NCBI GenBank assembly: GCA_037447605.1
Contig: JBBHKD010000031.1
Coordinates: 1 to 35,024 of the forward strand
Reading direction: 5' to 3'
Origin: Zygnema circumcarinatum SAG 698-1b
Taxonomy: Eukaryota; Plantae; Zygnematophyceae
Length of the DNA stretch: 35,024 nucleotides
A program made the translations under genes and the position numbers. Shown here piece after piece: positions 1,871 to 33,789 of the stretch (position 1 is the stretch's first letter; each line of letters starts with the position of its first letter). The notes beneath the pieces are model-generated. The model had not been told where the DNA came from, ran no database searches, and saw nothing but the letters and a program-made list of their open reading frames with translations.

Positions 1871-2094
1871 NNNNNNNNNNGCCAGAGATCTGGCCGTTTC
1901 GTCCATCCCCGAAAGTAACACTTTCTGAATGGGGATCTGTGGTCAACCCAAATCCATGGGTGAATGCAGAACTAACAAAGTTAGCATCTGCCCCAGTATC
2001 TAGCAGTACAACTGCTGGGTGGCCATTGGCTGACCCGATGAAGGTCATGGCGCGATGGGCAAGGTGGAACATAGATCGCACTATATGCGTAGGT

Positions 2095-2516
2095 TGAGGA
2101 CGAGCCGTCCTCCACACCAAGGTGTAGGGGGATCGAACCAACGAACGGGTGGATCCTTCCACCAACTTGTGCCCTTTCCTCAACTGTTTCACCAACCGCC
2201 AGTTGGCGTTGGGAAAAGTGCGAATTGCCAAGTGCTGAGGAACCAGCACATGCAGCCCAAGGATATGGGATGTGTCCCGCATGACATGCATGGCATTCAT
2301 GGCACAATTCACCAAGATATCATTACCCATGACATTAAGGATAAACACATTCCATTGACCATGCATCACCACATCCATAAACCCAGAAGGAGTCACTACA
2401 GTGGCAGGGGAAAGAGAAATGGAAGAAGGAAGTACATCCAACACAAAGAGATCTTGCACTCCCAAAGGTCTGCCCACCAAGTTAAGAATGTCCGTGGTTC
2501 TAAGAAACAATAGTCT
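2095..2516 (-). CDS. Extra domain between NC and protease, putative Dam-like methyltransferase fold (copy 1)
   Basis: Open and in frame with the protease. DLF at 2445-2453, then GFMD, VFILNVMG (NVMG at 2325-2336), LHVLVP, WRLVKQLRKGH. The fold assignment is pattern-based inference. Confidence 0.5.
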
Positions 2517-2811: not shown

Positions 2812-3559
2812 CGACGTCATCGATATCACCATCAAATTCGAGCTCTACGATGAGCTGATGCAAATGAAGATGGCCCAGACCGAGGAGTTGACCACATACG
2901 TGATACGCTTTGACGAACTGATGGCGAAATTCGTTATCGCCAGGCAGCCTATCGTCCAGGATCATCAGATTGTGAGCTTCCTCCGAGGTTTGCCGAGCCG
3001 GTTTGCACCAACTATCAACTCCCTGAAAACCCTGCTCGTCAAAAATACGCTTACTCTTGAGGAAGTGATAATGCGAGTGAGAGCGGAGGAGAGCACGATC
3101 AAAGGGACGAAGAGGTCCACCTCGGAGGACGTGATGGCGATCGACCAGCGGAGACCTCAGAAGAACAGTGGAGCGCCGGCACGACTTTGCAACTTTTGCA
3201 AACGCAAAGGTCACCTTGAAGCCGAATGTCGAACCAAGAAGGCTGCCCAGGGCAACGTACCGACCCCGAGCGCACCCAAGAAGGACGGCAAAGGCAAAGG
3301 CAAGGAGATCATCTGCTACAAGTGCGAACAGCCGGGACACATGGCGCGGAACTGCACGGCAGATGTAGCCGCCCAGATGAGCGCGAGTCTGTCGGCTAGT
3401 GAAGCAAAGCACGCAGCATTTGTAAATCAAATTTCAGTTAATGAAATTGACTATTCTGATTATCTGCCGTGGCTTATAGACTCAGGTGCTTCTAAGCACA
3501 TATTAATGCGGCGGCTCAAGTCTCTATTTTCTCTCCACGTCACCCGAATCTTTGGATGA
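2812..3559 (+). CDS. gag: Copia gag C-terminal half with two CCHC knuckles and protease active site
   Basis: FLRGLPSRF; CNFCKRKGHLEAEC (3188-3229); CYKCEQPGHMARNC (3314-3355); WLIDSGAS. Confidence 0.92.
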
Positions 3560-4399
3560 TCACAGCCCGATGTTGTCGGCCCGCGGGAACCCGGATATTT
3601 GTTACACAAGGAGGGAGTAGTCAGTGTCACCATGCGGTGAAAGACGACTTCCCAAATCCAGGTTGACGGCTGCACTGACCCTTAGAAATAACTTCTTTTA
3701 GGTTAGTGGATCTGCGGGGGCGGATATGAGGGATATTTAAAATGAATACACACGCAAAATAGTGCATAGAAAAACCCGAGAAAAATCACGTGTCCCGAGG
3801 ACCCGGCCCGAGGGGAGGGGCTCTGCTACCTAGGCTGACCGGTAAAAGCAGGGAATTGAGTCATCGCGTAATTTGAGGCAACAAAGCGTTAGGGAGTCTC
3901 GGTGGCGGCTTGATGCTTACGCCCGAACTCTCAACTCATGAAGCAGTTCCCGAAACTACTTGGCGAGGATTGACATAGCTGTCCTAGGGAAGCGGTGCGA
4001 CAATGGCGAGTGAGCCGTGCACTCCCGCGGTCGCGGCCGGCGACCATGGGCCAGCCCACAAGGCGGCGGGGCGGCCATTTTTATTGGCGAGGAAGTTCCG
4101 GCGAACTTGCGAAATGAAACCGGCGTCCCGCAAACAAAGTAGTAGCGAGAACACCAGCATGCTATGCAGACGGTACTCTGTATGACGGCAACTAAGTCAG
4201 GGGCTAATTTTAGTGGCGCCCCGCACGCTACGCCGTGGCGTACCATCGGCCGAATATTCGCTGGCCCAGGCGGCCTTAGCGAAATTCTACTCAGGCGAAG
4301 TAAGTCGGCATTCAATAGAGGACTCCGGAAGTCGGCCTGCCTTGACCTCCGATTCAGCCCGGCGTAGCACACCGTCGACTTGGGCACACAATGCGTCTG

Positions 4400-5235
4400 T
4401 GATGCAGAGACCGCTACGACCTGGAGCCTGCGTCGAGGTTTCCCCTCCTAGCGGCTCGAAAAGCGGGGAGAAGTGCGCCCATTGCGGTAGGCCAAGACCC
4501 ATTGTCACCTTCACGACCCGCGGCGGAGACGTTCCGCGCCACGGAGGTTGGGCTTCGTTCTGGCGACATGCAGTGAACCCGATCCTCCACGAGAGGCGAA
4601 GGAAGTTCGGTACTTCGCCATTCCTTATTGACTACTCAAGGAAGATCTGGGTTGCGCTATTGAAGCACAAGAGCGAGGCATTCGATACCTTTTGTACTTG
4701 GCAGACAGAGGTAGAAAGGCAGTCCGGTGAAAGGATTCAAAGACTCCGGACGGATAATGGGGGAGAATATAAATCCCTCCAGTTCTCTGAATATCTTCAG
4801 TCCCTTGGGATCCGACACAAGTTCACGGCCCCGTACAACCCACAGAGCAACGGAGCAGCGGAGAGAGTGAACCGTACCCTCGGCGACATGACGAGGTCGA
4901 TGCTTAGTGAGTCCCCCTTCTCTTTCAATTTTTGGGGAGAAGCCATCCTCACGACGACCTACATTCGGAATCGATGTCCCTCCAGCGCCCTGAAGGATCA
5001 CAGGAAAGTACCGGAGGAGATGTGGAGTGGGAGGAAGCCCACGATTCAGCACTTACGAGTATTCGGCTCGCCATGCTGGATAGCGATTCCAAAGAGCAAG
5101 CAGACGACGAAGTTCAGCCCGAGAGGAGAATTCGGCTACTTCCTTGGCTACAACGCCGACAGTTTGACTTATCGCCTCTGGAATCCGTCCACACAGAGAA
5201 AGGAAGGTCGACAAGTGTCAGCGACCTTACGTTGA
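4400..5235 (+). CDS. pol: Copia integrase core, frameshifted at its 5' end
   Basis: IDYSRKIWV, RTDNGGEY, NGAAERVNRTL, FWGEA, LRVFG, FLGY motifs in ORF 4213-5235. Confidence 0.93.
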
Positions 5236-5299
5236 AACCGCAAGGGAGGCGCGGCCTTGAACTTCGAGTGGGCAGCTCCCGACCATAGAATTTCTCCCA

Positions 5300-5809
5300 G
5301 TGAGGGATATTCTGGGAGGTGAGGATCTGCCCCCACCAGCGTCCTTCCCCTTCGACCCAACGGACCAAAACCCACTTCGGCGCTCGGTGTCGCCGCCACG
5401 TGGAGGAGAGGCCTTTCAGGAGGAAGCGCCCGAATCGGCATTCCCGGAGGAACAGCCCGAAGACAACCTGTCCGATCTTGACAACGATCAGGACATCACT
5501 GAAGATGAAGCGGAGGAGCCTCCTACTGCGCAGGTACAACCCAAATGGGTACCGCGGCATGGGATGGACCCACCCCTGTATGCCAACGCGAAGGGGTTTA
5601 CACCTAACTACGGGACAAAACCACCTTGGAGGCCCAGGAACAAGCCTGTGAAATACGGGGATTTCGGTCCAAGGAACCCATGGACTCAGAGGGGGAAGAG
5701 GCCGAGGGGAAACCCAGAAAAGGTACCCCTTGACTCAGCCGACTTCACAGGAATGGCACTTTGCCTTATGGCACATTTCGAGGAGCCGCCTACCATTCCG
5801 GCGCATTAG
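5300..5809 (+). CDS. Acidic, Pro-rich IN-RT linker of copia pol
   Basis: ORF between integrase and RT, ending in HFEEP-like pre-RT motif. Confidence 0.7.
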   Translation: MRDILGGEDLPPPASFPFDPTDQNPLRRSVSPPRGGEAFQEEAPESAFPEEQPEDNLSDLDNDQDITEDEAEEPPTAQVQPKWVPRHGMDPPLYANAKGFTPNYGTKPPWRPRNKPVKYGDFGPRNPWTQRGKRPRGNPEKVPLDSADFTGMALCLMAHFEEPPTIPAH

Positions 5810-6543
5810 ATGGAAGCGGGCCCTTAGCGAAGTGGAAGTCGCCATAGATAGCGGTGAATAGTCTTAAGAGGAAATAGGACATGGCGGCTAGAGGAGCTGC
5901 CCCCAGGACGCAAGGCAATCGACTGCAAGTGGGTGTTTAAAGTCAAACGGAAATCAGATGGGAGTGTAGATAGGTTCAAGGCACGGCTAGTGGCGAAAGG
6001 TTTCGCACAGAAATTCGGAATCGACTATTCTGAAACCTTTGCACCCGTAGTCAAGTTCAACTCACTGCGCGCATTGATTTCGATCGCGGCGGACGAAGGG
6101 ATGCACGTCCACCAGCTGGACATCAAAACGGCATTTCTTTATGGAGATCTCGAGGAGGAGATCTACATGCAGCAACCGGAGGGAACGGTTGAACCAGGAG
6201 CAGAGCACCTCGTCTGCAGACTTGTCAAGAGCCTATACGGGCTGAAACAAGCGCCGAGAATTTGGTACCAGAAAATCCACGAACTGCTCATCAAGAATGG
6301 CTTCACGCGCTTCAACGCCGACCACTCGGTGTACACGCAAGGGGAGGGAGACGCACAGATGTTCGTAGATATCTACGTAGATGACCTCATCATTGTGAGT
6401 TCCTCCATGAAGAGCATTCAGGGTCTCAAGGACCTTCTAAAGCAGAATTTTCAGATGTCAGATCTCGGCCCTGCGGAATATCTTCTCGGCATCCAGCTTA
6501 AGAGGGGGAGAGACGGAAGCTTGTTCCTCTGCCAGGAGAAGTA
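5810..6543 (+). CDS. pol: Copia A reverse transcriptase, second copy, cut by gap
   Basis: ORF 5933-6568 with KARLVAKGF, LYGLKQ, IYVDD; only scattered substitutions versus copy 1. Confidence 0.95.
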
Positions 6544-6553
6544 NNNNNNNNNN

Positions 6554-7840
6554 GTAGGAAGTATATAGAGAGTAGCATTCCTCAGAGTAAATAACCTCAT
6601 ACCACATGCCAATGGGGGTGTGTAGCGAGCTGAGGCCGAGCCTGTAGTTAAGAAGAGGAGTAGTGCTGCCAGTCTTGGGAAATAGTAAGTGGGGTAGTGC
6701 AAGCTGCATTAAGCAGCCAGGGGCTGCTTGAATCTGTTGTACTTCACCTCCAAAGAAAATCAGAGTTTTATGCCCGGTGGGGCTTTCTCTATCTTGACGT
6801 CTCTTGTCTTGCATCTATCTTGAGCTTTCCTTTCGCGAACAGCTGCTGCGAAGATGTCTACGACTCAAGAGCCGAGTGGAGGCGACTCTGTCGAGGGTGG
6901 TTCCACCATGGAATTTCCAACAGACCACTCGCGGAGTGGGTTCGCTGGCTCGATTGTACGGCAGAATGGTCAGCGGGTGAAGAATGCTAAGGAGGGCTGG
7001 CGAAGCGGCGGAACTGTATGGATGGACAAGAACTAGGTCGGTGCCATCGTAGGTTTACGAGGCGCACTAGCTGGTCGCTAATTCTGAGTGCGCCCACTCA
7101 GCGGAATGCAAGGGCCGGCCGTGACGTGACAATTGTGTCACGTCACATCGCCATGGTTNNNNNNNNNNTGTAATGCTGCTCTGTCGTTGGTTGTTTAGGA
7201 AGAGCAAGTAGAGGCTGAGGCGTAGAGGAGTCCGGCCTTGTGTATGAAGGTCGTGAGAACTAGCTCTCATCATGCTAAGCTTTAGTGAAGAAGTTAGATG
7301 GTGTGTCGCTCATGTGTTGAGGTAGAGGAGGAGTTCAAGGAGGCAGTTAGTGCCTGGCTACTGCAGTTGGGGTGTAGGCTATCTATGAGAATAGGATAGT
7401 GCTCATGTAAGGAGGAGAATCTAGCATAAGGGATTATGTAGATTTCCCAAAGAGCTTGTATTACACTCTTGAAGTTTAAGGAGTTTTATGGCCGTGGGCT
7501 TTCTCCTTATTACTGCATCATTTGTCATGTGAGTAGTCGTGTTGGATTGACGTGGTGGATGAGTGGAGGTGACCATTGTATGGGCGGTGTGTTGCTCCAC
7601 ACGAGGAGATCATTGAAGGAGCGTGGACTTGAGGAGCCGAGACCATGGAGGAGTTGAAGTGTTCTTGTAGGTGTCGCTTTTAGTTTTCCGCTGTGCGCAC
7701 CTGGCAAGGGGTGGATGGAAGGCAGTTAGTGGAGGAAGCGGTATGTGGCCCAAGTGGAAGATGAAGAAAGTTTTGAGCTTCATCCGGGCATGTATTTATC
7801 CCTTCCTTGAAGTCTGCCCTCTGGGCCCCTTGCACCAACA
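6554..7840 (+). repeat. Copia B-type 5' LTR, partial, contains gap 7159-7168
   Basis: Colinear with about 14290-15050 (shared ctagctctcatcatgctaagctttagtgaagaagttag). Ends CCTTGCACCAACA, the same end as 15050, followed by a PBS. Confidence 0.85.
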
Positions 7841-11109: not shown

Positions 11110-11119
11110 NNNNNNNNNN

Positions 11120-12923
11120 AGACTCGGTCGAAACTGTACCTTTGCACGGACAGGAGTCTGAGGACTTGGATATGGCCGAGAGAGACGCGATGAGGGCAAG
11201 GATGCCTCCGGGATTTGTTCCCGGAATTTTCTTCAACTCGAGGAGTGGGAGAACGCAAGGACCGCGGAGGAGCACCCGTGTGGTGAGGAGGCCTGAACGA
11301 TACAGGCCGTCGCAGACTAATCTGATGCAGGAGAGAGTGCCTACGGACTCTGCTGACCTCGCAGGAGTTGCTCACTGCTACATGATTACCGAGCCGCAAA
11401 CCTTCCGAGGCTGAGAGCCACGATGGGGTCGATGCAGCGAAGTGGCGAGGCAGCTGGTTCAGCGAGTGGAACAGCTTGACACAGAACGGGACGTGTGACT
11501 GGAGGCGCCGAAGGGAAGGAGAGCCATCGGAGCGCAAGGTGGGTGTTCAGGGTGAAGCGAAGGCGGACGGAGTGTCGACCGCTCACAAGGCGCGGCTGTG
11601 CGAAGGGCTACAGCCAGAAGCACCGGCACCCATGACACGGAGACCTCCGCCTCGGTGGTGAGTCTCACTCCCTCCGTGCCTCACTCCATCGCAGCTGTGA
11701 GGGATGCATGTCGATCAGCCAACACATCAGATTTGCTTTGCACGGACATCTGCGAGCAGATCTACATGGTGCAGCCCGAGGAAAGTTGTCTTGGGGCACA
11801 GCATCCTTGTCTGCCGCTGCAAGCCAAGAGTCTGCATGGACTTGAAGCAGCATCTAGGATTTGGACAAGAAGATTGACGATCTTCGAGGAGAACGGGATT
11901 TGTGTGCTTTTGAGACGGATCATCCCGCCCACCACAGCAGCAGCAGATCTCATATACGCGGGATTGACGTGGATGACCTCATTATGGCGGGCCTCATCTT
12001 GGAGAGAATCAATGATCTGAAGAAGCTTTTGCAAGTGGAAATCGAATGTCGGATCTCAAGGCGGTGAGTCTTGGGGACACAGACTGAAGGGCAGGACGGA
12101 AGTCTGTTTCCTGAAGTCAGAGAAGCAGCCTGATGATGATGGTGAGATTCAATATGGAGGGAGCGCAGACCGTGCACCAGTCCGATGGAGATCGGGCGCG
12201 AGATTGTTGAAATATATGGAGCCTGCGACGCACGCGCAGGCACACGCTGCATACGGAGCTGCTGCAGACCTGCTATCGAAGTTTAATGTACCTGATGATT
12301 GCTACCTTGACCGACTCTGCGAAGGCTGTGAGCGCCGCAAGTCGGTTCATGGAGAATCCCGGCCCTGAGCATTGGGAGGCCGTAAAGCGAATCTTTCGGT
12401 TCGTACGGGGGACCCTGGAGTACGGACTTCGTTACGAGAGAGGGCCGAACAGAGTGATCGGATACACCGACTCTGACTGGGGAGGTGACGTGGACACATC
12501 GCGATCGACCTCCGGATTTGTTTACCTGAACGCAGGTGGAGCGATCTCATGGAGCTCGAAGCTACAGGATTCGGTTGCGTTGTCTAGCACCGAAGGCGAG
12601 TACATGGGAGCATGTCACGCAGCGAAGGAGGGAGTTTGGTTCCAACATTCTTTGATGAGTGTAAGAGGCCACAACGTCCCTTGACTTTGTTCACGGATAA
12701 TTGCCCTCTGTCATACTTCTTGTAAATCTTGCAATTTCATAAGAGGACAAAGCACATTAGAGTACAATACCATTATGTGCGAGAATTAGTAGAGGAGGGG
12801 ATGATTGTTGTGAAGTTCGTGGGGACGAAGGAGCAGGCTGCGGATATGTTGACTAAAGGAGTTAGTGGTGAGACGCTACTAGTGAATAGCAGACTCATTG
12901 GGCTAGGGCCCATGAGGAACTGA
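11120..12923 (+). pseudogene. pol: Copia family B pol C-terminus (linker, RT, RNase H), indel-riddled
   Basis: RRSTRVVRRPERY and EPQTF linker motifs; RT remnants; GYTDSDWGGD, ISWSSKLQDSVALSSTEGEY, KRTKHI, ADMLTKG. Confidence 0.92.
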
Positions 12924-17749: not shown

Positions 17750-17900
17750 TAATCTCGTGAGCTCCTCGCAATTTGTCGATTGCTCACGTTCCCACGCTAT
17801 GCTCAACCCCATAGCCCAAACCATTTCACGCAGATATTCGTGGGCGGAAGTCTCGACCTCTACTCACAAATCGCTGGGTTTGGATGGCCTCTACCTCATA
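17750..17900 (-). CDS. Integrase C-terminal chromodomain (H1)
   Basis: EYEVEAI, then EYLVKWFGYG and EHSxWE recoverable with 1-nt indel corrections. Confidence 0.85.
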
Positions 17901-19418
17901 CTCGAGGTCACCTTCAACTTCCACTGGAGGGGGAGGTGGTTGGACTCTCCCATCGCTGCGGTATGCCTTAAGAAGACCCACATGAAAGACCGGATGCACT
18001 TTCATATGAGCCGGTAAAGCCAACCGGTAAGCGACCTCACCGATTCGCTTCACGACCGAAAAAGGTCCCATGAAGCGAGGCCATAATCCTCACGTTCCGC
18101 CAGAAGTCTTCGTGGCGCAAGTTCGGCCAGACCGAAGAAGACTGATCGCCTCTACAGTTGGGTTAATGCAAAGACGACGACGACAAGATAAAGTTTTCTC
18201 TCGGCCGACCGCTGCTAACAGGTCTCCGCTCGCCCTTCAGAACGGACATTTTCCGAGAGGAAAGCACTAACGCAGAGGTTGACTCCTCGCCAGCCTCTCA
18301 TGCCCCAAGGATCCGGGAGCCGGTGAACATCCATGTTCCACACATCTGGCTGTTGATCTCTTGGCTGCAGGGGATTTAGAGGATGCTGACCAAAGTTCAA
18401 GAAGAAAGGAGTGGTACCGATTGATTCCTGGAATGCATTATTAATGGCATACTCAGCCACCGGGAGCAGTTCATCCCATCCATCCGGGATGGGTCCCACA
18501 TAATGCCTCAAATAGTCTTCCAGAATCCGGTTAACCCTCTCCGTCTGCCCATCTGTCTGAGGGTGGAAGGCTGTACTCATAGCCTGCTTAGTCCCGATAA
18601 TACGAAGGATTTCTTTCCAGAAATGTCCTGTGAATCGGGTGTCACGATTTGAGATGATCTCAGATTGAAGCCCATGTTGACTCCAGACTTTGTCAACATA
18701 TAGCCGCTATTTTCGTTTCCAAGACTGGCCGCTCTATAAAGTACGAAAATGCACCATTTTGTCAGCGTCGAGCAAACACGGTAGATGGAGTCAAAACTCG
18801 AAGCTATCACAGTAACTGCGGATCAAATCCATATACCTACACTTCCCACCTCCTAGAAGGGAGGGGCGTAGGGGTCAAGCAAGCTGCTAATGTGTCCAGG
18901 CGCAGGCTTATCCCGCCGACAAGTTGGGCATGCGAGTACATACGCTCATCGCCCGGGCTGTACTCCGCCACCAGAATTCTGAGTAAAGGCTTCACGGTTT
19001 TGGCAACTCCTATATGGCCCTCGTGATGAGGATCGTGCATCTCTACTCAAGATGAGCCGCCGCATGATCCAGCCTCTTGGCAATGACTAACTGCCATCGC
19101 GGGTACCAAAATTGCTTTTGAGCACGAAGCTATACTATAGCCGCGCCTTGGCCGTCCAGAACAAAGGATCACTAGCAAAATTCTCCTCCCCAATCATCAT
19201 CCGGTTCAAATCGTGAGAGAAGCAGAGGGTTGATCGCTGGCCACCGCGAAGGGTTTATGACAAAACATACCGAGATAAACGCCGGTTGGCCGCCTCGCCT
19301 CCACCATCTCGCACTCACCACAACACTCGAAGTCGACGAAAGCACCATCCGTGCTAGATGAATGTTGCCCGCTAAGCGGTCCGCCATATTCAGCCTACTG
19401 TGCCTGTGATACCCACTT

Positions 19419-20148
19419 TGTAACGGCCGAGACCGACTCTTCAAATTAAGCAAGGAAAAACATCACCAAAGACTTCGAAGTTCGTGAGAGAGAGAGAGAG
19501 AGAGAGAGCAAGAGAGCGAGAGCCAGAGAGTGGCGCAGCCCCGGCAGGGTGCAACCGAATGCCGCAGATGCTATTAGTGACGATACCACCGCCCCTTTAC
19601 GCCCCCGCTGGAACCTCCTACCAAAGATGGAGGATTGGAAGCTGTGGTCGCCCAATGGCGTGACGCCACGGTCCCTCTCCTCTCGACTCAAAATGGGTCG
19701 AGGTGTACAACGCATCTATCGTTGTCGCGATTTCCGCCGGCGCAGGCCGCGACGCGCCGTGATGCTTGCTGCACGGCCGGATCCTACGCGCCGGGTCCGG
19801 GATCATTACCATCCGCATCAACGGCAATCGCTATTGTACCTGACGAATCCGAAGTTCGTGGCGGGGATCCGCCGCCGGCTCCCAGATCCAACCACGCGTA
19901 GACCGATTGGTCCCGCGTGCCGTTAGTCCGCGATCCTCCTCTACGAGAGGTGAGGGGACCTTGGCCGACGCGGGGGCCCATAGAGATTATGTGGCGCAAG
20001 CCCCACGCAACCGCCTATGGTTCCGGAACTCTGTGACCTCCTCGTCAGCCCCATATAGGGTATCCGATGCCCCAACCGTTAGGTATTGCATCGATGGAAA
20101 CATAAAGCCACTGCTCTATAACCCTCGGGTGATCAGGAAGAAGCTACA
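19419..20148 (-). repeat. Solo D-type LTR with CACTT target-site duplication
   Basis: CACTT at 19414-19418 and 20149-20153; TGTAAC...GCTACA; H1 RNase H sequence on both sides. Confidence 0.9.
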
Positions 20149-20353
20149 CACTTGCAAATGAACTGCTGGAGGAACTCGCATCAAATAAGGCTCGGGCCAC
20201 CAAAAGAGTTTGCCACAAGTGGGAGAGGAACGCCGCGGACGGTGGTCCGTGACTGCCGGACTGCCACCGCCTCTAAATAAAGAACGCTATGTCCTCGTAT
20301 GCGGAACTACGCCTAAGAGCTCTTGCTCGTATGATTAGTTTCGCCAAATTGGT

Positions 20354-21052
20354 TCATTTTTGCGACTTCTCATAAGCAAGAGAGGTTGGTCGCTCGAACA
20401 AGACCGCGACCCAAAGCTTAACCCAAGCAGAGGCGTCACAGACCACCTCATACGGTAAGGTGGGATCAGCCAACCTCAACGTAGGTGCTGTTACAAGCGC
20501 ATGTCTCACACCATCAAAGGCCGTCTGGCATTCTGGTGTCCACGCATAGGCGACACCGGAACGTGTCAAGTTGGTAAGCGGAGTTACCAACTTACTAAAG
20601 CCTTGGATAAATTTACGAAAATAATTCGCAAATCCAAGAAAAGATCGCAACTGATGAAGATCAGCCGGTACAGCCCATGTCTTTACAGCAGACACCTTGG
20701 CTGGATCAGGTTTCAATCCCTGATCATTCAAGATATGCCCAAGATACAACAGCTCACGTTGCATGAAGTTACATTTCTTTCGCTTGGCATAAAACGTGTG
20801 TTTCCGCAACACCTCGAACACTTTGCGCACATGCACAAGATGCTCAGCGTCTGTCTTGCTGAATACCAGGATATCATCCAAGTACACAAGGACAAACTCA
20901 TCCATGCCGACGAACATTTCGCTCATCACGCTGGAAGGTACCGGAGCATTGGTCAAAAGGTAAAGACCTGTATCAGGCCAATCGGGCGTCCGGTGCCGTT
21001 TTAGGTACATCGGCCCGCCGACACCTGACCATGATACCCTGCGCAAGATCAA
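20354..21052 (-). CDS. pol: Gypsy reverse transcriptase / connection region (H1)
   Basis: VLVYLDDILVFSK, KCNF, YLGH, LRSFLGFANYFRKFI, CDAS. Confidence 0.95.
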   Translation of the reverse strand: MILRRVSWSGVGGPMYLKRHRTPDWPDTGLYLLTNAPVPSSVMSEMFVGMDEFVLVYLDDILVFSKTDAEHLVHVRKVFEVLRKHTFYAKRKKCNFMQRELLYLGHILNDQGLKPDPAKVSAVKTWAVPADLHQLRSFLGFANYFRKFIQGFSKLVTPLTNLTRSGVAYAWTPECQTAFDGVRHALVTAPTLRLADPTLPYEVVCDASAWVKLWVAVLFERPTSLAYEKSQK

Positions 21053-23090
21053 GCCAGGTGAATACTCGCCCCTCGCAGACGCATCTAAAGAATACCGTCA
21101 CCGCGCCGTAAAGCAAATCGCTTCTTACCGCGGATCTTGCTGGCGGCGCCCCATAATCGGCGCACATACGCGAAAGACCCATCCTTCTACCAACGGCGAG
21201 GATGGGGAGCCCCAAAGGGCCTGGCCGCTCAATCCAGTTCTGCCTTGTGCCAATGAAGTTGCCAAGAGGTCTCCTCACTCTTCTCGGACTAAGCCTATGC
21301 ATAGGCTCCCCAAGGAGGCTTCGCTCGCTCAGTGGGTATGGTATGCCCCACCCTTCCGCAGAGGCAGATCAGAATCAACCTCAGCCGCGGTGTCGCCTGA
21401 GTCTAAGTGTCAAGAGAGGAAGAGAGAGAGAGGAGCGTGAGCTCAATGTCGGGTAATAAAGTAGCCGGATGAGTTCTCCCATCCGCAAATTTTGCTCCCC
21501 GCTGGAATCCCCCTACCAAGATGGGAGGATCGGGGAGCTGTGGATCGCCATCAGAAAGCCCGGCCAGGTATGGTGATCCTTAACCGAAGTTATCGCTGGC
21601 GACAAGCCTGCGGGTCTCTTCGCTGCATTCACGGGCGCCGGTGACGCGCGCGCTGGGCCGTGCGCTGCGTACGGGTTGGTGCACCGATGAAGTCGCATTG
21701 CCGCCTTCGCCTCGCATAGCATTTTTACTTGCTTCTGTTAAAAGATGCCACCGCGATTTCGCGGGTCGCGCTACAAGGCGCAAGGCGCCGACGGCGGTGC
21801 GCTACGCGCCGTATCTTCGCCGCGGATTCAGATAGTCGGTGCGCCCGCATACCTCGCATCGACGCACCGCGACGCATCCAAAAAGAGATCCTTTGCCCGG
21901 GCCATTAAAGGATACCCAGCCCAAGACCTCTCGCGTTCGCAAATGGGCCCTATCCTATCCGGCCAGCGCCGAGATGAAGGGATGTTTCACAGACACTATG
22001 AGTAATGCCTTCCAGTGGTCACGCCAGAGCGCGCTACATTACCCTCAGGAGTATGTGAACGCCTCGCTCAATCGGGAAAAGTAATCTTGGCGCACCAAGT
22101 AGCTTTAAGAGGTATTCGCTCTGCTCGCTGCGTACCTGAGGGCTCGGGCCAAGTAATCCCGCCAAGTCCCTTTCTCCGGTAGCCACAAGGACGGGTCGGG
22201 AACCCCCTAGCCTCGCCTCGCCACCACCGGGTTCAAGGCCCCCAAGCATAATCTCGTGAGCCTGCGGCAATTTGTCGATTGCTTCTCACGCTCCTATCAC
22301 TGCTATGTTCCAACCCCCATACCCCAACCATTTACCTAGATATTTCAGGGCGTGAAGTTCTAATCTCTACTCACCGCCCCGTAGGTTCAATGGCTTCAAC
22401 CTCATATACTGAGATCACCTTCAACTTCCAATCGAGGGGGAGGTGGTTTGACTCTCCCATCACGCGTATGCTCTTAAGAAGACCCACATGAAAGACCGAT
22501 GCACTTTCATATTTGTTTAAAGCCAACCAGTTAGTTTACTCCGACCGATTCGGGCCTGGGCGACCGTGAAAGGTCCCATTGCTTGTGCCATAACTTACGT
22601 TCCGGCCAGAAGTCTTCAGCGCTAGTTCGCCGTAGACTCAAAGAAGACTGACGCCTCTACAGCTGTTAATGCAAAGACGACGACGGATCAGCATAAAGCT
22701 TTCGGGCCACATCGGGCCAAGCATCAGTGGTCCGCTTGGCCTCAGAACGCTTCTGGACATTTTCCGAAAGGAAAGCACTAACGGCAAGTAGTGTTGATCT
22801 CCGCCAGCTCCTCCTATGCCCCAAGGATCTGGGAGCCTGTGAACATCCATGTTCCACACATCTGGCTGCTGATCTCTTGGCTGCAGGGGATTTAGAGGAT
22901 GCTGACCAAAGTTCAAGAAGAAAGGAGTGGTACCGATTGATTCCTGAAATGCATTGTTAATGGCATACTCAGCCACTGGGAGCAGTTCATCCCATCCATC
23001 CGGGATGGGTCCCACATAATGCCTCAAATAGTCTTCCAACATCCGGTTCACCCTCTCCGTTTGCCCATCTGTCTGAGGGTGGAAGGCTGT

Positions 23091-26000
23091 TGTAACAACT
23101 GAGAAAACGCCTCCTCAGCCGTGCGCGGAATTGCACTTCAGAGTTCAGCAAAGAGAGAGAGAGAGAGCGAGAGCTTCAGAGGGAGGCGCAGCCCTGGGCA
23201 GGGGTGCAACCGAATGCCGGTGACGCTTGGTCGGGTGACGGCGCCACCCAGCCCTTATTTCCCCCGCTGAACTCCTACCAAAGATGGAGTGATCGGAAGC
23301 GGTCGCCCAATGGCAGGCTGCCACGGTGTTCCTCTCTCACCCTCGAATGGCTCGTAGGTGTACAACGCATTTAACGCCTTCTCCTCAGATTCTCCATGGC
23401 TGCTGCTGGGCCAGCGACGTGCGCGCTGGGCGCCGTCAGACGCCAAGGTAATCTGGCCGGATCCTGCGCCGGGCGCCGGTCCGGACTGCTGTACTCTGCA
23501 CACGCACTCTCAACGGGTAACCGCTATTGTACCTGACGTAACGGGAATTCCGTGTGGGACTCGGGCCGCCCGAGATCCAATCGCGGGACCGGATTGGTCC
23601 CGTGGTGCCGGTAATCTCCAATCCTCCCTTAAGCCGAGGAGGGGACCTTGGCTGCTGGTGTGGGGCGCACCGTGACTATGTGGTGCCCCCACGTGTGAAC
23701 CAGTTCTTACGGTTCGAACCTAGGACCTCCGTGGTCCTATAGGGTATCCCATGCCCTAACCGTTAGGTACCCATTGGATGGAAATACAAAGCCATGCCGA
23801 AGCTCTGCAACCCTTCCTTGGGGTGATCAAATGAAGTGCTTCGCTACATTACTCCCCCTCGCGGAGAATGTGTGAACGCCTCGCTCACGCAGGGTAGTAA
23901 AGGCACCAGTTTTAACGTACGCCAATCCCCTACGCGGATAACCGAGGGCTCACATAACCCCATCAAGTCCTTTCCGAAAGTTGCGCCGGGGATTCGCCAG
24001 AACCCCCGAGCCGCCCTCGCCGCTTCTCCTCCCCCTCGCTGGCCCCGCGCCCCAAAGCATGTTGATGAGCCTTGGCAATTGGTTGCTCTGTTCCTCGCTT
24101 CCCATGTGCTATGTTCAACCCTTATAGCCCAACCACTTCACGAGGTATTCGTGACGGAAGATCGACCCTTTCGCTGCATGTGGGCTTGAATGGTTTCAAC
24201 TTCGTACTCAAGTTCCACCTTCGTTCCAATCGGTGGGGAGTGTGGTTGGATTCTCCCATCGCTACTTCGTGACCTTAGCAAAACCCATGAAAAGACCGAT
24301 GCACCTTCATGAGCTGGTAAATCCAACCGTAAGCTTAATTCTCATTGATTCGTCACTCACTTTAAAAGGTCCTGGCTGAACGGGGCCACAGCCTACGTGT
24401 TCCTATGCTTTGAGTCTCAAGTCACAGACTTAGCAACACTCACGCTTTCGCTGAAGGTGAGTTGGGTACGGTGACGGTCAGCATAGGCCTTTTGTCGCGA
24501 CTAGGCCGCTAGCAGGGTCTGCCGTGCCCTCTGCAGCGCCTCAGACATTAGCCGGACAAAAGATCTGACTGCGGGAGGTTGAGTCCCTTCAGTCCCTCTC
24601 AGCTTCCAAGGATCGGGGGTTTTGTGGACGCCCATGTTCCACGGATCAGGGGGCTGATACCTTGGTTGCAAGGGATTTAGAGGATGTTGGCCAAAGTTCA
24701 AGAAGAAAGGGGTGGTACCAATGGACTCCTGGTAAGCATTATTGATGGCATACTCAGCCACTGGGAGCAGTTCATCCCACCCATCCGGGGTAGGTCCCAC
24801 ATAATGCCGGAGGTAATCCTCCAGGATCCTGTTCACCNNNNNNNNNNGGGATTCATCTTGCGGCTTTCATACGCCAAAGGTTGGCCATTTTGAAACAAGA
24901 CGGCACCCAAGGCGAATCCCGAAGCATCACAAACCACCTCATAAGGCTTGGACGGGTCCGCTAAACGGAGAGTGGGTGCGGTAACAAGGGCATGGCGCAC
25001 ACCTTCGAATGCATCCTGGCATTCAGGGGTCCATGTAAAGGGGACACCGGAACGTGTCAAATTAGTCAAGGGAGTAACCAACTTACTAAACCCTTGGATG
25101 AATTTACGAAAATAATTCGCAAATCCCAAGAAAGACCTCAACTGATGCAAGTCAGTCGGTGGTGCCCAAGTTTCCACCGCTGAAACTTTGGCAGGATCAG
25201 GCCGAAGGCCTTGATCATTCAAGATATGCCCAAGATAGAGCAACTCACGTTGCATGAAGTGACATTTCTTCCTCTTGGCATAAAACTGGTGTTTCCTCAG
25301 GGTCTCAAACACTTGCCGAACGTGTTCNNNNNNNNNNGGAACCAGCACATGCAGCCCAAGGACATGGGAGGTGTTTCCCATGACATGCGAAGCATCCATG
25401 GCACGTTGCATGAGAACATCATTGCCCATGACATTGAGGATAAAGACATGCCAAGCACCATTCATCACTACATCCATGAACCCAGAAGGAGTCACTACAG
25501 TGGCAGGGGAAAGAGAAATGGAAGAAGGGAGAACATCAAACACAAAAAGATCGTGTATTCCCAAAGGTCTGCCAACCAATTTAAGAATGTCCGAGGTTCT
25601 AAGAAACAAGTGTCTCCTCGCACTGGTGGCAGCCCTCATCCCTCCCCCTAACCTAGCATGCCCACCAGCAACGACCCCTAAGCTGCTGGTGGGTTGGGGT
25701 TTTCCGGCCCCTTGCCCTTCTTGTCCTTGGTGTTGAGAGGGCAATCCCGGGCCTTATGCCCCTCCTTGCGGCAGCGGAAACACTTGTTCTCCCGCTGCAT
25801 CTTCTCCATTTCCTCTCGAGTCAACTCTCATGGCCGCAGCAAAGGGTGGGCGCAGCCACTTCCGGCCGCTGGTGCTGCTCTTCCCCGCCATCTTTGGCGT
25901 GTGTCAGGGTCCTGCCTCCACGACCCTGCCACGCCGCCTCCTACCCCCGCCGTCGAAGTACCTCGTGACACCGCGCAGGGGCGGTGTCCAAATCAATGGC

Positions 26001-29585: not shown

Positions 29586-30059
29586 TTACTCCCCCCCTGT
29601 GAGAATGTGAACGCCCTCGTTCACGTGTGTGGGGTAGTAAAGGCATCTCGTAGTTTCAAGGCACGCTGAACTTACGCTGTGATAACCGGAGTGGGCTCGG
29701 GCCGATAATCCCGTCAAGTCCTCCGAAGTTGCGCTAACGCCCGAACCCTCGCTGCGGCCGCCATTTCCGCGCCACCCCCAAAGCATGCTGATGAGCTCCC
29801 GGCAATTGGTTAAGTTGCCCTCGGCTTCACAAGTGCTATGTTCAAACCCATAGCCAAACAATTTCACGAGGTATTCGTGAAGGGAAGATCGACACTTTCT
29901 CACAAGACGGTGGGCTTGAATGGTTTCAACTTCATACTCAAGTTCACCCTCAAGCTGCACTGGTGGGGGAGGTGGCTGGATCCTCCCATCGCTACGGTAG
30001 ACCTTTAGCAAACCCACATGAAAGACCGGATGCACCTTCATGTGGGATGGTAAATCCAA
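29586..30059 (-). CDS. pol: Integrase C-terminus (GPY/F region) with chromodomain at about 29790-29936 (D-a)
   Basis: HPVFHVGLLK, EYEVETIQAHR, EYLVKLFGYG, EHST, NLTNCREL. Confidence 0.9.
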   Translation of the reverse strand: MDLPSHMKVHPVFHVGLLKVYRSDGRIQPPPPPVQLEGELEYEVETIQAHRLVRKCRSSLHEYLVKLFGYGFEHSTCEAEGNLTNCRELISMLWGWRGNGGRSEGSGVSATSEDLTGLSARAHSGYHSVSSACLETTRCLYYPTHVNEGVHILTGGE

Positions 30060-30266
30060 CCTCGTAGTTTATTGATTCGGGCTTCCACCTCCCCAAAGGT
30101 CCGGACATGAAGCGGGCCACAGCCTACGGTTCCGCCATAAGCTTTGAGTCTCAAGTTTGCCGTGGTTAAAGTAACACCTCACGCTTCGCCAAGGTGAGTT
30201 GGGTACGTGACGGTCAAGATAGGCCTTTTGTCGCGACCGGGCCGCCAGTGGTCTCAGCTGCGCCCT

Positions 30267-31463
30267 TCAAGCAGCCGCCTCCTCGCATATTAGCCGACAA
30301 AGATCTCTCGGGACCGGGCGGAGGTTGAGTCCCACGCCCCTCTCTACCCCATGATCGGGGTTCTCGCGGACGCCTGATGTTCCACGGATCGTAGCTGGAT
30401 CCCTTGGCTGCGGATTTAGAGGATGCTGGCCAAAGTTCAAGAAGAAAGGGGTGGTACCAATGGACTCCTGGTAAGCATTATTGATGGCATACTCAGCCAC
30501 TGGGAGCAGTTCGTCCCACCCATCCGGGGTAGGTCCCACATAATGCCGGAGGTAATCCTCCAGGATCCTGTTCACCCGTTCCGTCTGGCCATCAGTTTGC
30601 GGGTGGAAAGCTGTACTCAACGCCTGCTTGGTCCCAACGATTTTGAGCACTTCCGCCCAAAAAATGGCCTGAATCGCGGGACGCCTTCGCCGCATTACAA
30701 TTTCCATCAAGACCATGCCGCTCCACACTTTGTCAACATACAACCGTGCAATCTCGTCGGCCCCAGCTGTCTTAGTAGTTGGTGCAAAATGCACCATCTT
30801 GCTGAGCCGATCGACAAAGACGAGGATGGAGTCATGCCCCCGAGGTGTCACAGGAAGATCTGTGATCAAGTCCATACCCACACTATCCCATTTCCGAAAA
30901 GGAGGTGTGAGGGGTTGCAGCTGGCCAGGGATCCTGCCAGTGCGGGGTTTGTTTCGTTGACAAGTTGGACAAGCGAGTACATACGCTTTCACATCCCTCG
31001 AGAGTCCAGGCCACCAGAACTCTCGGAGCAGTGCCTCACGGGTTCTGGCAACTCCCATGTGACCCTTGTACGGAGGATCATGGAGCTCACTCAGAATGAG
31101 TTGCCGTACAGTTCCGGCCTTGGGCACGACCAACTGCTGGCCGTGGTACCAGAATCCGTCCTTAGACACCACTTTGTCCTTATAGCCATTTCCTTGGCCA
31201 TCCAAGAACAAAGGATCACCAGTATACCCCTCCTGGATCATCCGTCTGAGATCAGAGAGAGCAGGAGGGTCGACTGCGTCACTGGTGGAGGGATCTATGA
31301 CAGCATACCGAGATCTTTGAGACTCGGGTTGGCCGCCCCTCACCTCACATATCCGCTCCACCAACACTGAGTCGACGAAAGGCCGCGACCATCCAGTAAG
31401 ATGCCGAGGCCGCCACTCGGGTTCAAGTACATTCCAAATTCTCTTCCCGCCGATAAAACCCAT
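30267..31463 (-). CDS. pol: Gypsy integrase (HHCC and DDE core), D-a
   Basis: LHDPPYKGHMG, CPTCQRNK, GMDLITDLP, FVDRLSKM, AFHPQTDGQTER. Confidence 0.95.
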   Translation of the reverse strand: MGFIGGKRIWNVLEPEWRPRHLTGWSRPFVDSVLVERICEVRGGQPESQRSRYAVIDPSTSDAVDPPALSDLRRMIQEGYTGDPLFLDGQGNGYKDKVVSKDGFWYHGQQLVVPKAGTVRQLILSELHDPPYKGHMGVARTREALLREFWWPGLSRDVKAYVLACPTCQRNKPRTGRIPGQLQPLTPPFRKWDSVGMDLITDLPVTPRGHDSILVFVDRLSKMVHFAPTTKTAGADEIARLYVDKVWSGMVLMEIVMRRRRPAIQAIFWAEVLKIVGTKQALSTAFHPQTDGQTERVNRILEDYLRHYVGPTPDGWDELLPVAEYAINNAYQESIGTTPFFLNFGQHPLNPQPRDPATIRGTSGVRENPDHGVERGVGLNLRPVPRDLCRLICEEAAA

Positions 31464-31729
31464 CGGGCAAATAAACCTTTGGAGGAATCCCCAGACCGGC
31501 CGCGGCTCGCTGCATACAGTGGGTCTCGTTGGGTTGAGAGGAACGTCAGCGGGCGGTGGTCAGTGACCAGCGTGACCGCTTTCGCCCCCTCTAAATAGCA
31601 CCGCCATGTCCTCAGGGCGTGGACCACTGCAAGCAGTTCCTGTTCTGTTGCAGAATAGTTGCGCTCAGCGGGATTCATTTTGCGACTTTCATANNNNNNN
31701 NNNTGGCACGATGGGCAAGATGGAACATA

Positions 31730-32190
31730 GATCGCACTATATGCGAGGGTTGAGGACGAGCCGTCCTCCACACCAATGTGTAGGGTGAGCCAACCAGCAA
31801 GCTGGTGGATCCTTCCATCTCTTGCACCAACGTGTGCCCTTTCCTCAACTGTTTCACCAACCGCCAAGTGGCGTTGGGAAAGGTGCGAACTGCCATGTGC
31901 TGAGGAACCAGCACATGCAACCCAAGGACATGGGAGGTGTTTCCCATGACATGCAAAGCATCCATGGCACATTGCATGAGAACATCATCGCCCATGACAT
32001 TGGGGATAAAGACATGCCAAGCACCATTCATCACTACATCCATGAACCCAGAAGGAGTCACTACAGTGGCAGGGGAAAGAGAAATGGAAGAAGGGAGAAC
32101 ATCAAACACAAAAAGATCGTGTATTCCCAAAGGTCTGCCAACCAATTTAAGAATGTCCGAGGTTCTAAGAAACAAGTGTCTCCTCGCACT
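31730..32190 (-). CDS. Extra NC-PR domain, putative Dam-like methyltransferase fold (copy 3)
   Basis: ORF 31675-32205 is open throughout and carries the same motifs as copy 1; NVMG at 31990-32001. Confidence 0.5.
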
Positions 32191-32249
32191 GGTGGCAGCC
32201 CTCATCCCTCCCCCTCTAATGGCATGCCCACCAAAGAACGACCCCTAAG

Positions 32250-33789
32250 TCAGCCGGTGTGGGTTGGGGTTTTCCTACTTTGCCCTTCCTTTTGTCCTGG
32301 TGTCGAGAGGGCAATCCTGGCCTTTGCGCCCTCTGGCGGCAAATGAACACTTGTTCTCCCGGGCTGCATCTTCTCCATTTCCTCCTCGAGTCAACTTCTG
32401 CCGCAGGCGTTGGGTGGGCGGGCACCACTTCCGCCGCCTCGCTGTTCTTCCCTCGCCAGCTTAAGTAGAGCCGAGGGTCCCGGGCCTTCCACCTAATTCT
32501 CAGCCACGCTGCCCGACCTCTCATTGCCTGAAGGGCCTCGTGAGACGCTCGCAGGGGCGGTGTCCAACCGGAATGGCCGCGATCAAAGCACAGCCTCGTG
32601 AGTCACGTCCCAATGCTCTCGTGAGTCCGTGGGTTAGTTCTTAGTCGCTTCCCTCGTGTGTGGCCTGCCATTCCCCGGCGGAAAAAGAACTCAGCCCCGT
32701 CTCGCTTGTGAGTGGGTGATCCTGGTGCACCACTTGTCGCAGCGTCCGCGTAAAACCGCTTGACGCTGGCTTGGACCATGTTCTCGAATTCTATCCCGGG
32801 CCTCCAAGCCGGATCCAAGGCCCCAGTGTTTGATAGTTCATTCTGAACTTATCCCAATCGCCCTTAATGTCATCGAGAGGCCCCTATACACACGGTAGCG
32901 CGGCTCCTTCGAAAAGTTGGGTAAGCAAAAGCTTACCCAATCGGGAGGGGGGGATGCTTGGTCGCAAGAAGGTAACCCTTCGTTTGACCCAACCACTGCT
33001 CAATCGAGCAGTCCGTGGTAGGATGTTCGCCCCAAAAGGAAAGCGGGGCCACCTTGGCTCGATTCCGTCGGGTATCCCTCGTGAGGTTGCGGGAGCAGCC
33101 CCAGGATCGGGATCTTCCTCCGCCCCCGCAAATAGCCTGCCCTCGACGGGTCCCCATCACAGGGTTCACACCCCCTGCGACTTCCGCGGGAAAGTCTCGG
33201 GTAGGGGGCTGATCACCGCTGGCCGCTCTCAAGTAGGGGCCTGGCCGGGGCGCCGTGACGACGACGCCACCGGAGTGGTTTGCCTAACCCCTTCCCCAGG
33301 ACCTGATGTATCCACTGCCTCTACAGCCTGAGGGGGGGTTCGGGGCATACCTTCCTCGATCCTTCGGAGCCTGTCCGAAAGGCCCCGGAACTCCATTTGG
33401 AGCGTGTCCACCAAGCGGCGGACCGTGAGCTCCATGTCGTCCACCTTCCTTGAGCAGCTCAACGTATTCACGTTCTGCTCCCTTACACTCTTCCCCAGAT
33501 CCTCAATCCTGTTCCTCATTTTCTGGGCCGCGCCCACGGTGATGTGGGCCCCGATCATGGGGTAGGGCCCAGTTGAGGCTTCTACCGGAGCCACGGGCTC
33601 CGGTTGGGTGGGGAGAGGGGCGGTGTTCTCCGGGTGACCTTGATCACCCGTGGGCTCGGGACTCGGCCCCTCCATAGGGACGGGCGTAGTCTCCGAGGTC
33701 TCCTCCATCTCCTCGTCCCGGGGAACGGGAGGTAGAGGTGGCGGCCCCGAGGGCCCCGGGTCCCCTCCGGCCCGGCGAGTGGTCACCAT
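32250..33789 (-). CDS. gag: Gypsy gag (D-a), frameshifted or noisy
   Basis: MVTTRR start just downstream of the PBS; Pro/Glu-rich N-terminus, coiled-coil-like segment, capsid-like segment (paralog in D-b reads WDKFRDELIKHF...AWDKFQNMVQ), CCHC remnant near 32300-32350. Confidence 0.82.

Follow-up and report, generated by a model that had tools for sequence, protein, structure and literature searches.

The window analyzed here, the whole of a 35,024-nucleotide stretch of contig JBBHKD010000031.1 from the zygnematophycean alga Zygnema circumcarinatum SAG 698-1b, holds three loci of one chromovirus family, all on the minus strand, in which an open domain lies between the zinc knuckle of gag and the protease of Pol (Table 1). 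An earlier note on this DNA, made from the letters alone, drew attention to these three copies and proposed that the domain resembles a Dam-like adenine methyltransferase. The three open copies are there as it described. Our preferred explanation, to which we give a probability of about 0.72, is that the element is a green-alga-type chromovirus whose Pol carries at its N terminus a domain derived from the Pfam family PF05869 (Dam), that this domain has lost its catalytic tetrad and that it has been retained for a noncatalytic role.

In copy 1, the gag knuckle can be read straight from the sequence as CX2CX4HX4C, with no match to Pfam zf-CCHC at E ≤ 0.01, and the gag stop codon is at 2579–2581. 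The Pol frame, at −1 to that of gag, stays open across the entire 921-bp island, and the domain continues without a stop into the protease motif LLDTGA, bearing out the earlier note on the continuity of the frame. The protease is recognized by Pfam (Asp_protease_2, E = 9.9e-5 at residues 219–261 of the open reading frame [ORF]; also gag-asp_proteas and RVP_2) and is matched by BLASTP to the proteases of relatives. Inside the overlap of the two frames, a few codons ahead of the gag stop, the gag frame contains one heptamer of the XXXYYYZ type, and we infer from the arrangement of the frames that Gag-Pol is produced by −1 frameshifting.

The remaining parts of Pol are spread over gapped fragments. 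The protease, the reverse transcriptase (RT) with RNase H, the DDE integrase and the C-terminal chromodomain are all present, with no single ungapped copy holding all of them. Pfam Chromo scores 28.9 bits (cut-off 25.1) within 29586–30059 on the minus strand, and Integrase_H2C2 is found by Pfam in the Pol downstream of copy 3 with an E-value of 1.7e-20. A search with the integrase ORF returned green-alga-type chromoviruses of Volvox africanus, Haematococcus lacustris and Closterium at ~50–55% identity, and the nearest relatives that carry a name are from Volvox, Haematococcus, Chromochloris and Closterium. The element is a green-alga-type chromovirus, that is, a Ty3/gypsy element with a chromodomain, and the classification given in the earlier note is upheld by the Chromo match together with the integrase and RT/RNase H pieces.

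The window contains eight runs of exactly 10 N (1871–1880, 2802–2811, 6544–6553, 7159–7168, 11110–11119, 24838–24847, 25328–25337 and 31694–31703), and all chromovirus pieces relevant to the domain end at such gaps. Repeat copies have probably been merged or strung together in the scaffold, and the copies and their neighbors need not adjoin one another in the genome; a larger number of genomic copies may stand behind what we call the three copies, through collapse or chimerism in the assembly. Copy 2 is a mosaic. Near the knuckle, its gag C end agrees with copy 1 at 97.4% identity, against 76% for copy 3; over the domain the order is reversed, with 98.2% identity to copy 3 and 85.1% to copy 1. 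Such a pattern reflects either recombination between subfamilies near the gag–pol junction or a chimera of the assembly.

Table 1. Chromovirus pieces at the three domain-bearing loci of the window (aa, amino acids)
Feature	Coordinates	Strand	Remarks
Copy 1, island	1881–2801	−	921 bp between two 10-N gaps
Copy 1, gag C end with CCHC zinc knuckle and stop	2579–2801	−	From translation; upstream part lost in N gap 2802–2811
Copy 1, overlap of gag and Pol frames	2582–2801	−	Pol at −1 relative to gag
Copy 1, diverged Dam-like (putatively DAM-derived) domain, N end of Pol	2049–2567	−	~170 aa, unbroken, without catalytic tetrad
Copy 1, N-terminal part of retropepsin, LLDTGA	1881–2048	−	In frame with the domain; cut by N gap 1871–1880
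RT C end and RNase H piece	24848–25327	−	Adjoins copy 2 across a gap; RT_RNaseH_2 (E = 1e-17) and RVT_1 (Pfam)
Copy 2, N-terminal two thirds of domain	25338–25666	−	Unbroken; cut by N gap 25328–25337
Copy 2, gag C end	25678–25898	−	3 frameshifting indels relative to copy 1 in the aligned stretch
Copy 3, downstream Pol: RNase H end, integrase (zinc-binding and core), SH3-like, chromodomain	29586–31693	−	Pfam; tblastn with proteins of a relative (L004)
Copy 3, domain, full length	31704–32232	−	Unbroken; ends at N gap 31694–31703
Copy 3, gag C end, broken	32245–32466	−	Relative to copy 1, 7 indel events (6 frameshifting); knuckle not intact

The identity of the domain comes from its relatives. 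In an element of Volvox africanus (L005), a gene model just upstream of the protease has a precomputed Pfam match to PF05869, which our own Pfam scan reproduced at an E-value of 8.6e-6 (26.0 bits), and the N end of Pol shows an N-P-P-Y tetrad followed by ~100 aa and then the protease. Three further elements (L004, L006 and L008) have the same layout with degenerate tetrad positions. A word-indexed search with the N-terminal region of L004 found L004 itself only; a search with its Pol was used to gather the best 120 Pol relatives, which served as the sample for the family profiles. Of these relatives, 71 match a hidden Markov model (HMM) of the N-terminal region built from four sequences, and 106 match the HMM built from those 71 members, some of them only at the protease-proximal end. 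Three reach the PF05869 gathering score of 28.1 bits (P0233, 32.8 bits, E = 6.8e-8; P0217, 31.3 bits, E = 1.9e-7; P0211, 29.4 bits, E = 7.3e-7), and five more members score 25.9–27.7 bits, those just below gathering including P0147, P0173, P0141 and P0209. The last is a protein of Volvox reticuliferus, and the other Dam-bearing relatives include many Pol proteins from metagenomes. The Dam match lies N-terminal of the protease in every Dam-matching relative, and these matches cover only profile positions ~17–87 of 169. PCIF1 (PF12237) appears as a weak secondary Pfam match in L005 and P0233, and neither the profile of the relatives nor the Volvox domain brought up a meaningful match among the PDB sequences. 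A survey of algal chromoviruses, a comparison to which the earlier note had pointed, thus recovers Pol relatives with a homologous domain at the same place, several of them matching Pfam Dam.

The junction of gag and pol varies among these domain-bearing relatives. In L004 and L005, the two lie in the same frame with a stop between them; in L008, the frames of gag and Pol differ, as they do in the window, where the shift is −1; and in L009, Pol is at −1 and the ORF list shows no overlap. The differences may represent natural expression strategies or damage.

The window domain is connected to this family by several independent statistics. The 71-member HMM scores 10.3 bits against copy 1 (E = 2.7e-5 as a single comparison), a value reached by none of 1,000 shuffled sequences, and 7.7 bits against copy 3 (E = 1.6e-4, likewise for a single comparison), reached by 1 shuffle of 1,000. 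When the three window rows are aligned with the family alignment, hhalign gives an E-value of 2.7e-4 and a probability of 42%, the two being collinear over 141 columns at a low value of the parameter mact. The nearest relative is P0171, with 67% identity in the RT/RNase H and 56% in the integrase; its N end matches the family HMM at E = 2.9e-12, and the protein itself has no Pfam Dam match. Compared with the window domain, P0171 gives a phmmer E-value of 2.7e-5 over nearly the full length and, with composition-adjusted BLASTP (P0171/L009), an E-value of 5e-5 at 23% identity over 130 aa. The domain is directly upstream of the protease in both the window and the relatives, and the length and the order of the conserved blocks agree. 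Because several independent statistics concur and position, length and block order are the same, a shared origin of the window domain and the Dam-bearing Pol N ends appears well supported by the sequence comparisons, although not proven.

The copies also carry the mark of coding constraint. Over the domain, 15% of the bases separate copy 1 from copies 2 and 3 (85% DNA identity), and the frame is without stops in all three copies, the sole indel being one in-frame change of 9 nucleotides. Between copies 1 and 3, the method of Nei and Gojobori counts 76 differences in the Pol frame, 30.5 synonymous and 45.5 nonsynonymous, giving a ratio of nonsynonymous to synonymous rates (dN/dS) of 0.43 and a synonymous excess with a binomial P value of 0.0026. 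The earlier note had argued that a copy so diverged and still in frame suggests selection and had named this ratio as a check; the frame is indeed kept, and the ratio points the same way. In contrast with the domain, the gag C ends of the other two copies differ from that of copy 1 by frameshifting indels, 3 in copy 2 and 6 in copy 3.

The predicted fold points in the same direction, if weakly. An AlphaFold model based on an alignment of 80 rows, made of the window sequences and database Pol proteins, has a mean predicted local distance difference test (pLDDT) score of 68.7 and a predicted template modeling score of 0.53; the C-terminal half of the domain, which contains strands and helices, is modeled at pLDDT 77–86 and the start of the protease at 87–92. 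In Foldseek searches with this model, the top match in BFVD is a phage DNA N-6-adenine-methyltransferase (E = 8.3e-3, probability 0.99, template modeling [TM] scores 0.38 and 0.43), and the top match in the PDB is human PCIF1 (6irw_B; E = 0.017, probability 0.99, TM score 0.28), followed by KsgA/Erm, TrmI, ZCCHC4 and CcrM. These matches fit, if weakly, a methyltransferase-like alpha/beta fold, and they are consistent with the weak Pfam matches of the relatives to PCIF1. In the structural comparison that the earlier note had suggested, the best matches are thus adenine and other SAM methyltransferases, at E-values of 8.3e-3 at best and TM scores of 0.28–0.43, and the methyltransferase-like fold is a candidate one.

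The catalytic motif is a different matter. We compared 81 family domains sampled from P0123–P0242 and L004–L008 and found the tetrad [DNS]PP[YFWH] kept in 15 and missing from 66, 11 of the 81 having N-A-P-F at the aligned columns. Among the tetrad-less database proteins, 51 of 63 are uninterrupted Pol proteins of at least 1,200 aa, and loss of the tetrad is the majority state of the clade within the gathered sample. A scan of copies 1 and 3 of the window found neither the tetrad nor any Pro-Pro, and in copy 1 the alignments place either L-N-V-M or N-C-A-M at the corresponding columns. Several family positions at which one residue occupies 77–85% of the rows are replaced in the window copies as well; among the positions that are kept are a Phe column in the N-terminal part and the pairs Val-Pro and Val-Trp. 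Since both the tetrad and several other conserved positions are replaced, the window domain is, as judged from its sequence, most likely without the ability to methylate, and it is probably retained as an inactive remnant. The Dam-like identity proposed in the earlier note thus stands as a matter of ancestry, through profile, profile–profile and pairwise comparisons with the relatives, and is unsupported as a matter of catalytic competence.

A number of observations weigh against our preferred reading. The window domain has no match in Pfam at E ≤ 1, in NCBIfam and PHROGs at E ≤ 10 or among the PDB sequences at E ≤ 10, and a phmmer search of 1.84 billion representative proteins returned only two low-complexity, multi-stretch matches. 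The profile search of the translation against Pfam Dam and the PDB that the earlier note had in mind finds nothing, PF05869 itself giving no match to the window copies even at E ≤ 1–10; patterns back-translated from the window copies and from three relatives likewise found nothing when metagenomes were scanned. The domain has no BLASTP match to L004, and the hhalign comparison of the three window rows with the four relatives is not significant. We regard the domain as strongly diverged because the direct searches and the early comparisons with L004 and the four relatives failed; the link to the family emerged only with the 71-member profile and with P0171. The significant local alignment, moreover, spans only the C-terminal half of the domain, and the register of the N-terminal half shifts between alignments, hence the two readings of the tetrad columns. 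The detailed parallel that the earlier note had drawn, motif by motif, with the Dam-like domains of DIRS elements and phages fails in part, this N-terminal register being unstable. The N-terminal half is also the poor part of the model (pLDDT 40–66), no Foldseek match reaches E ≤ 0.001 and the TM scores are low. The dN/dS estimate compares two diverged sequence types, both from an assembly with gaps, and a similar ratio is obtained for the antisense frame with shared wobble positions. These copies may be dead relics, the retention being shown for the lineage and not for particular copies. Finally, the −1 frameshift is deduced from the frames only, and the heptamer differs from the classical slippery sites.

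Several of these points are what one would expect if the stretch were a fast-evolving, unstructured transframe spacer between gag and pol, unrelated to DAM and similar to it by chance or composition. Such a spacer would account for the failure of the direct database searches, for the insignificant hhalign comparison with the four relatives and for a first AlphaFold model, made from the three near-identical window rows, whose pLDDT of 46.6 was too poor to use and whose fold matches also pointed toward methyltransferases without significance. It is hard to reconcile with shuffled sequences reaching the HMM scores of the real ones in only 0 and 1 of 1,000 trials, with a BLASTP match to the nearest relative that persists after adjustment for composition, with a position, length and block order shared with relatives that match Pfam Dam, with the confidently modeled C-terminal half or with the dN/dS of 0.43. 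We consider this explanation unlikely.

A little less probable again is an active enzyme, an N6-adenine methyltransferase that would mark the cDNA or the RNA:DNA intermediate of the element; the earlier note had this as its stronger reading, and a recent preprint has it as its working model for DAM-LTR elements. The homology to the DAM family speaks for it, as do the relatives that keep the NPP-aromatic tetrad and match Pfam Dam, the adenine methyltransferases among the best fold matches and the one alignment register that leaves an Asn at the first tetrad column of copy 1. Against this, Pro-Pro is absent from the window copies, whose tetrad columns hold no aromatic residue whichever of the two candidate registers is used, the several positions conserved at 77–85% are replaced and Pfam Dam does not match; and even motif-bearing eukaryotic DAMs are reported in that preprint to have raised no N6-methyladenine (6mA) in Escherichia coli (Fernandez-Moreno et al., bioRxiv 10.64898/2026.05.21.726589, May 2026).

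It is very improbable that the open frame is a by-product and that the true sense lies in another frame or on the antisense strand (e.g., in the plus-strand ORFs at 2055–2513 and 31822–32346), or that the region is noncoding. The G+C-rich DNA does contain several open frames, and the wobble-sharing antisense frame has a dN/dS of ~0.5; however, that frame also contains stops in the comparison of copies 1 and 3, the four others have both stops and dN/dS values of 0.8–2, and only the Pol frame is stop-free in all three copies and runs into the protease. The alternative frames have no Pfam match, and it is in the Pol frame that the homology to the N ends of the relatives' Pol is found. We rejected the antisense and alternative frames for their stops, their dN/dS and their lack of family matches. 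Long antisense ORFs do lie over the domain in all copies (2055–2513, 25211–25651 and 31822–32346, all on the plus strand), without family matches; they are probably a by-product of composition, their dN/dS pattern being that of a wobble-sharing or out-of-phase frame. Least probable of all is a dUTPase-like module, a lead taken from the spacing of small motifs and favored by the NC–protease position that such modules occupy in betaretroviruses and some fungal Gypsy elements and by this literature precedent in Gypsy Pol: we rejected it, as there is no Pfam dUTPase match, the models show an alpha/beta fold where a dUTPase would be an all-beta jelly roll, no dUTPase occurs among 500 Foldseek matches in the PDB or among the BFVD matches listed, and the relatives match Dam instead.

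Under the preferred reading of a DAM-derived domain that has lost its tetrad, the Pol of the element would be read at −1 relative to gag and would begin with a Dam-descended domain of ~170 aa and not with the protease. The domain would be made only within the Gag-Pol frameshift product, next to the nucleocapsid (NC), and in this way would enter the particle. The catalytic tetrad of Asn-Pro-Pro-aromatic would have been replaced in the lineage, with the frame remaining open and synonymous changes in excess. Its present role would be noncatalytic: it may act as a folded N-terminal piece of Pol, perhaps binding nucleic acid or a partner, or it may serve to space the NC from the protease. A noncatalytic role seems the most likely one given the loss of the tetrad, the open frame with its synonymous excess and the same loss in relatives with an intact Pol.

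Other parts of the window are packed with retrotransposon pieces as well. Further chromovirus integrase and RT pieces, belonging to at least two more partial copies and 34–66% identical to the L004 proteins, lie at 17796–24863 on the minus strand; neither a protease nor a Dam-like domain was found in these partial copies within the window. Copy 1 is flanked by Ty1/copia pieces on the plus strand, at 1–1870 and 2812–6543. The first contains RVT_2 (E = 2.4e-79) and an RNase H-like end, and the second a copia gag (Retrotran_gag_2, zf-CCHC), a protease motif, an integrase core and a second RVT_2; positions 92–391 and 5873–6172 are 96% identical. Between ~7000 and 15000, the plus strand shows a strong and sustained skew of G over C, of 0.15–0.39 per kb. 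This region contains no long ORF with a family match and no tandem repeat; a decayed copia RNase H-like ORF lies inside it at 12286–12684. Tandem Repeats Finder reported nothing in the whole window.

A Dam-like domain in a chromovirus is not in itself new. The preprint cited above (10.64898/2026.05.21.726589) describes retrotransposons with prokaryote-like DAM domains, among them a "Chlorophyta DAM-chromovirus-like clade"; it derives the DAM domains of long terminal repeat (LTR) elements from DIRS elements, reports a conserved Asn-Pro-Pro pocket and proposes that the domains mark reverse-transcription intermediates or recruit the host AMT1. The clade is characterized by chlorophyte hosts, most of which encode AMT1, and by 6mA enrichment on its insertions. 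The window element resembles this clade in being a green-algal-type Ty3/gypsy chromovirus with a DAM-derived domain inside Pol. It differs from the clade as far as reported there, its domain being undetectable by Pfam and without the Asn-Pro-Pro triplet. By architecture and homology it belongs with the Chlorophyta DAM-chromovirus clade, of which it lacks these two reported features. The preprint text that was consulted does not mention the protease or gag, and the exact position of the domain is an observation of the present analysis. The majority loss of the tetrad in the 81 sampled domains likewise differs from the conserved pocket reported there. Because the screen of the preprint used hmmsearch at E ≤ 1e-5, domains like that of the window would have been missed.

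The window domain shares parts of its character with several other systems. DIRS1-like tyrosine-recombinase elements have a DAM-like methyltransferase domain and are, according to the preprint, the source from which LTR elements captured theirs; unlike them, the window element encodes an aspartic protease and, in place of the tyrosine recombinase, a DDE integrase with a chromodomain, and the DIRS domain is not placed between an NC and a protease. The phage and bacterial methyltransferases of PF05869 are the family matched by the relatives, whereas the window domain itself has neither the Pfam match nor the tetrad. The top BFVD match is annotated only as a phage DNA N-6-adenine-methyltransferase, and we make no claim that this protein belongs to PF05869. 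PCIF1, a cap-specific adenosine N6-methyltransferase, is the best PDB fold match of the window model at a TM score of only 0.28; it is a large cellular enzyme of mRNA with an NPPF motif, and the window domain is not claimed as a member. The dUTPase found in the Pol of some fungal Gypsy elements (PMC2864245) is an analogue in the capture of an accessory domain, and like that of betaretroviruses and these Gypsy elements, the window domain sits at the start of Pol; fold and family differ. Retrotransposons have also captured cytosine methyltransferases, with catalytic motifs reported to be kept (Gypsy-DNMT3 of charophytes, SymbioLINE/DIRS-DNMT; PMC5890265). These too are captured DNA methyltransferase modules, of a C5-cytosine enzyme and at a different position in Pol.

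For the reading made from the letters alone, the outcome is that the ancestry was right and the fold type may be right, that activity is unsupported and that the kind of element was already known; a reading of the sequence only is able to spot such a module. What remains of interest is a state that is motif-less and conserved at once. For annotation, the result means that ~170 aa which might have passed as an orphan spacer can be named. It was only in 2026 that retrotransposons carrying an adenine methyltransferase of prokaryote type were described, and a conserved catalytic pocket is the basis of the role proposed for them. In lineages that profile screens do not see, the module persists at the same place in Pol with the tetrad gone, and the number of DAM-LTR elements is undercounted by screens at E ≤ 1e-5. 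The tetrad-less majority, mostly with an uninterrupted Pol, bears on the question of what the domain is kept for. It is possible, though we put this forward only tentatively, that in most members of the clade, the window lineage among them, the DAM module is a pseudo-enzyme kept by selection at the NC–protease junction. If so, what selection maintains would be a noncatalytic property, such as nucleic-acid binding, the reading of 6mA, recruitment of a host factor or regulation of the protease, and not adenine methylation, and the current working model for DAM-LTRs would change.

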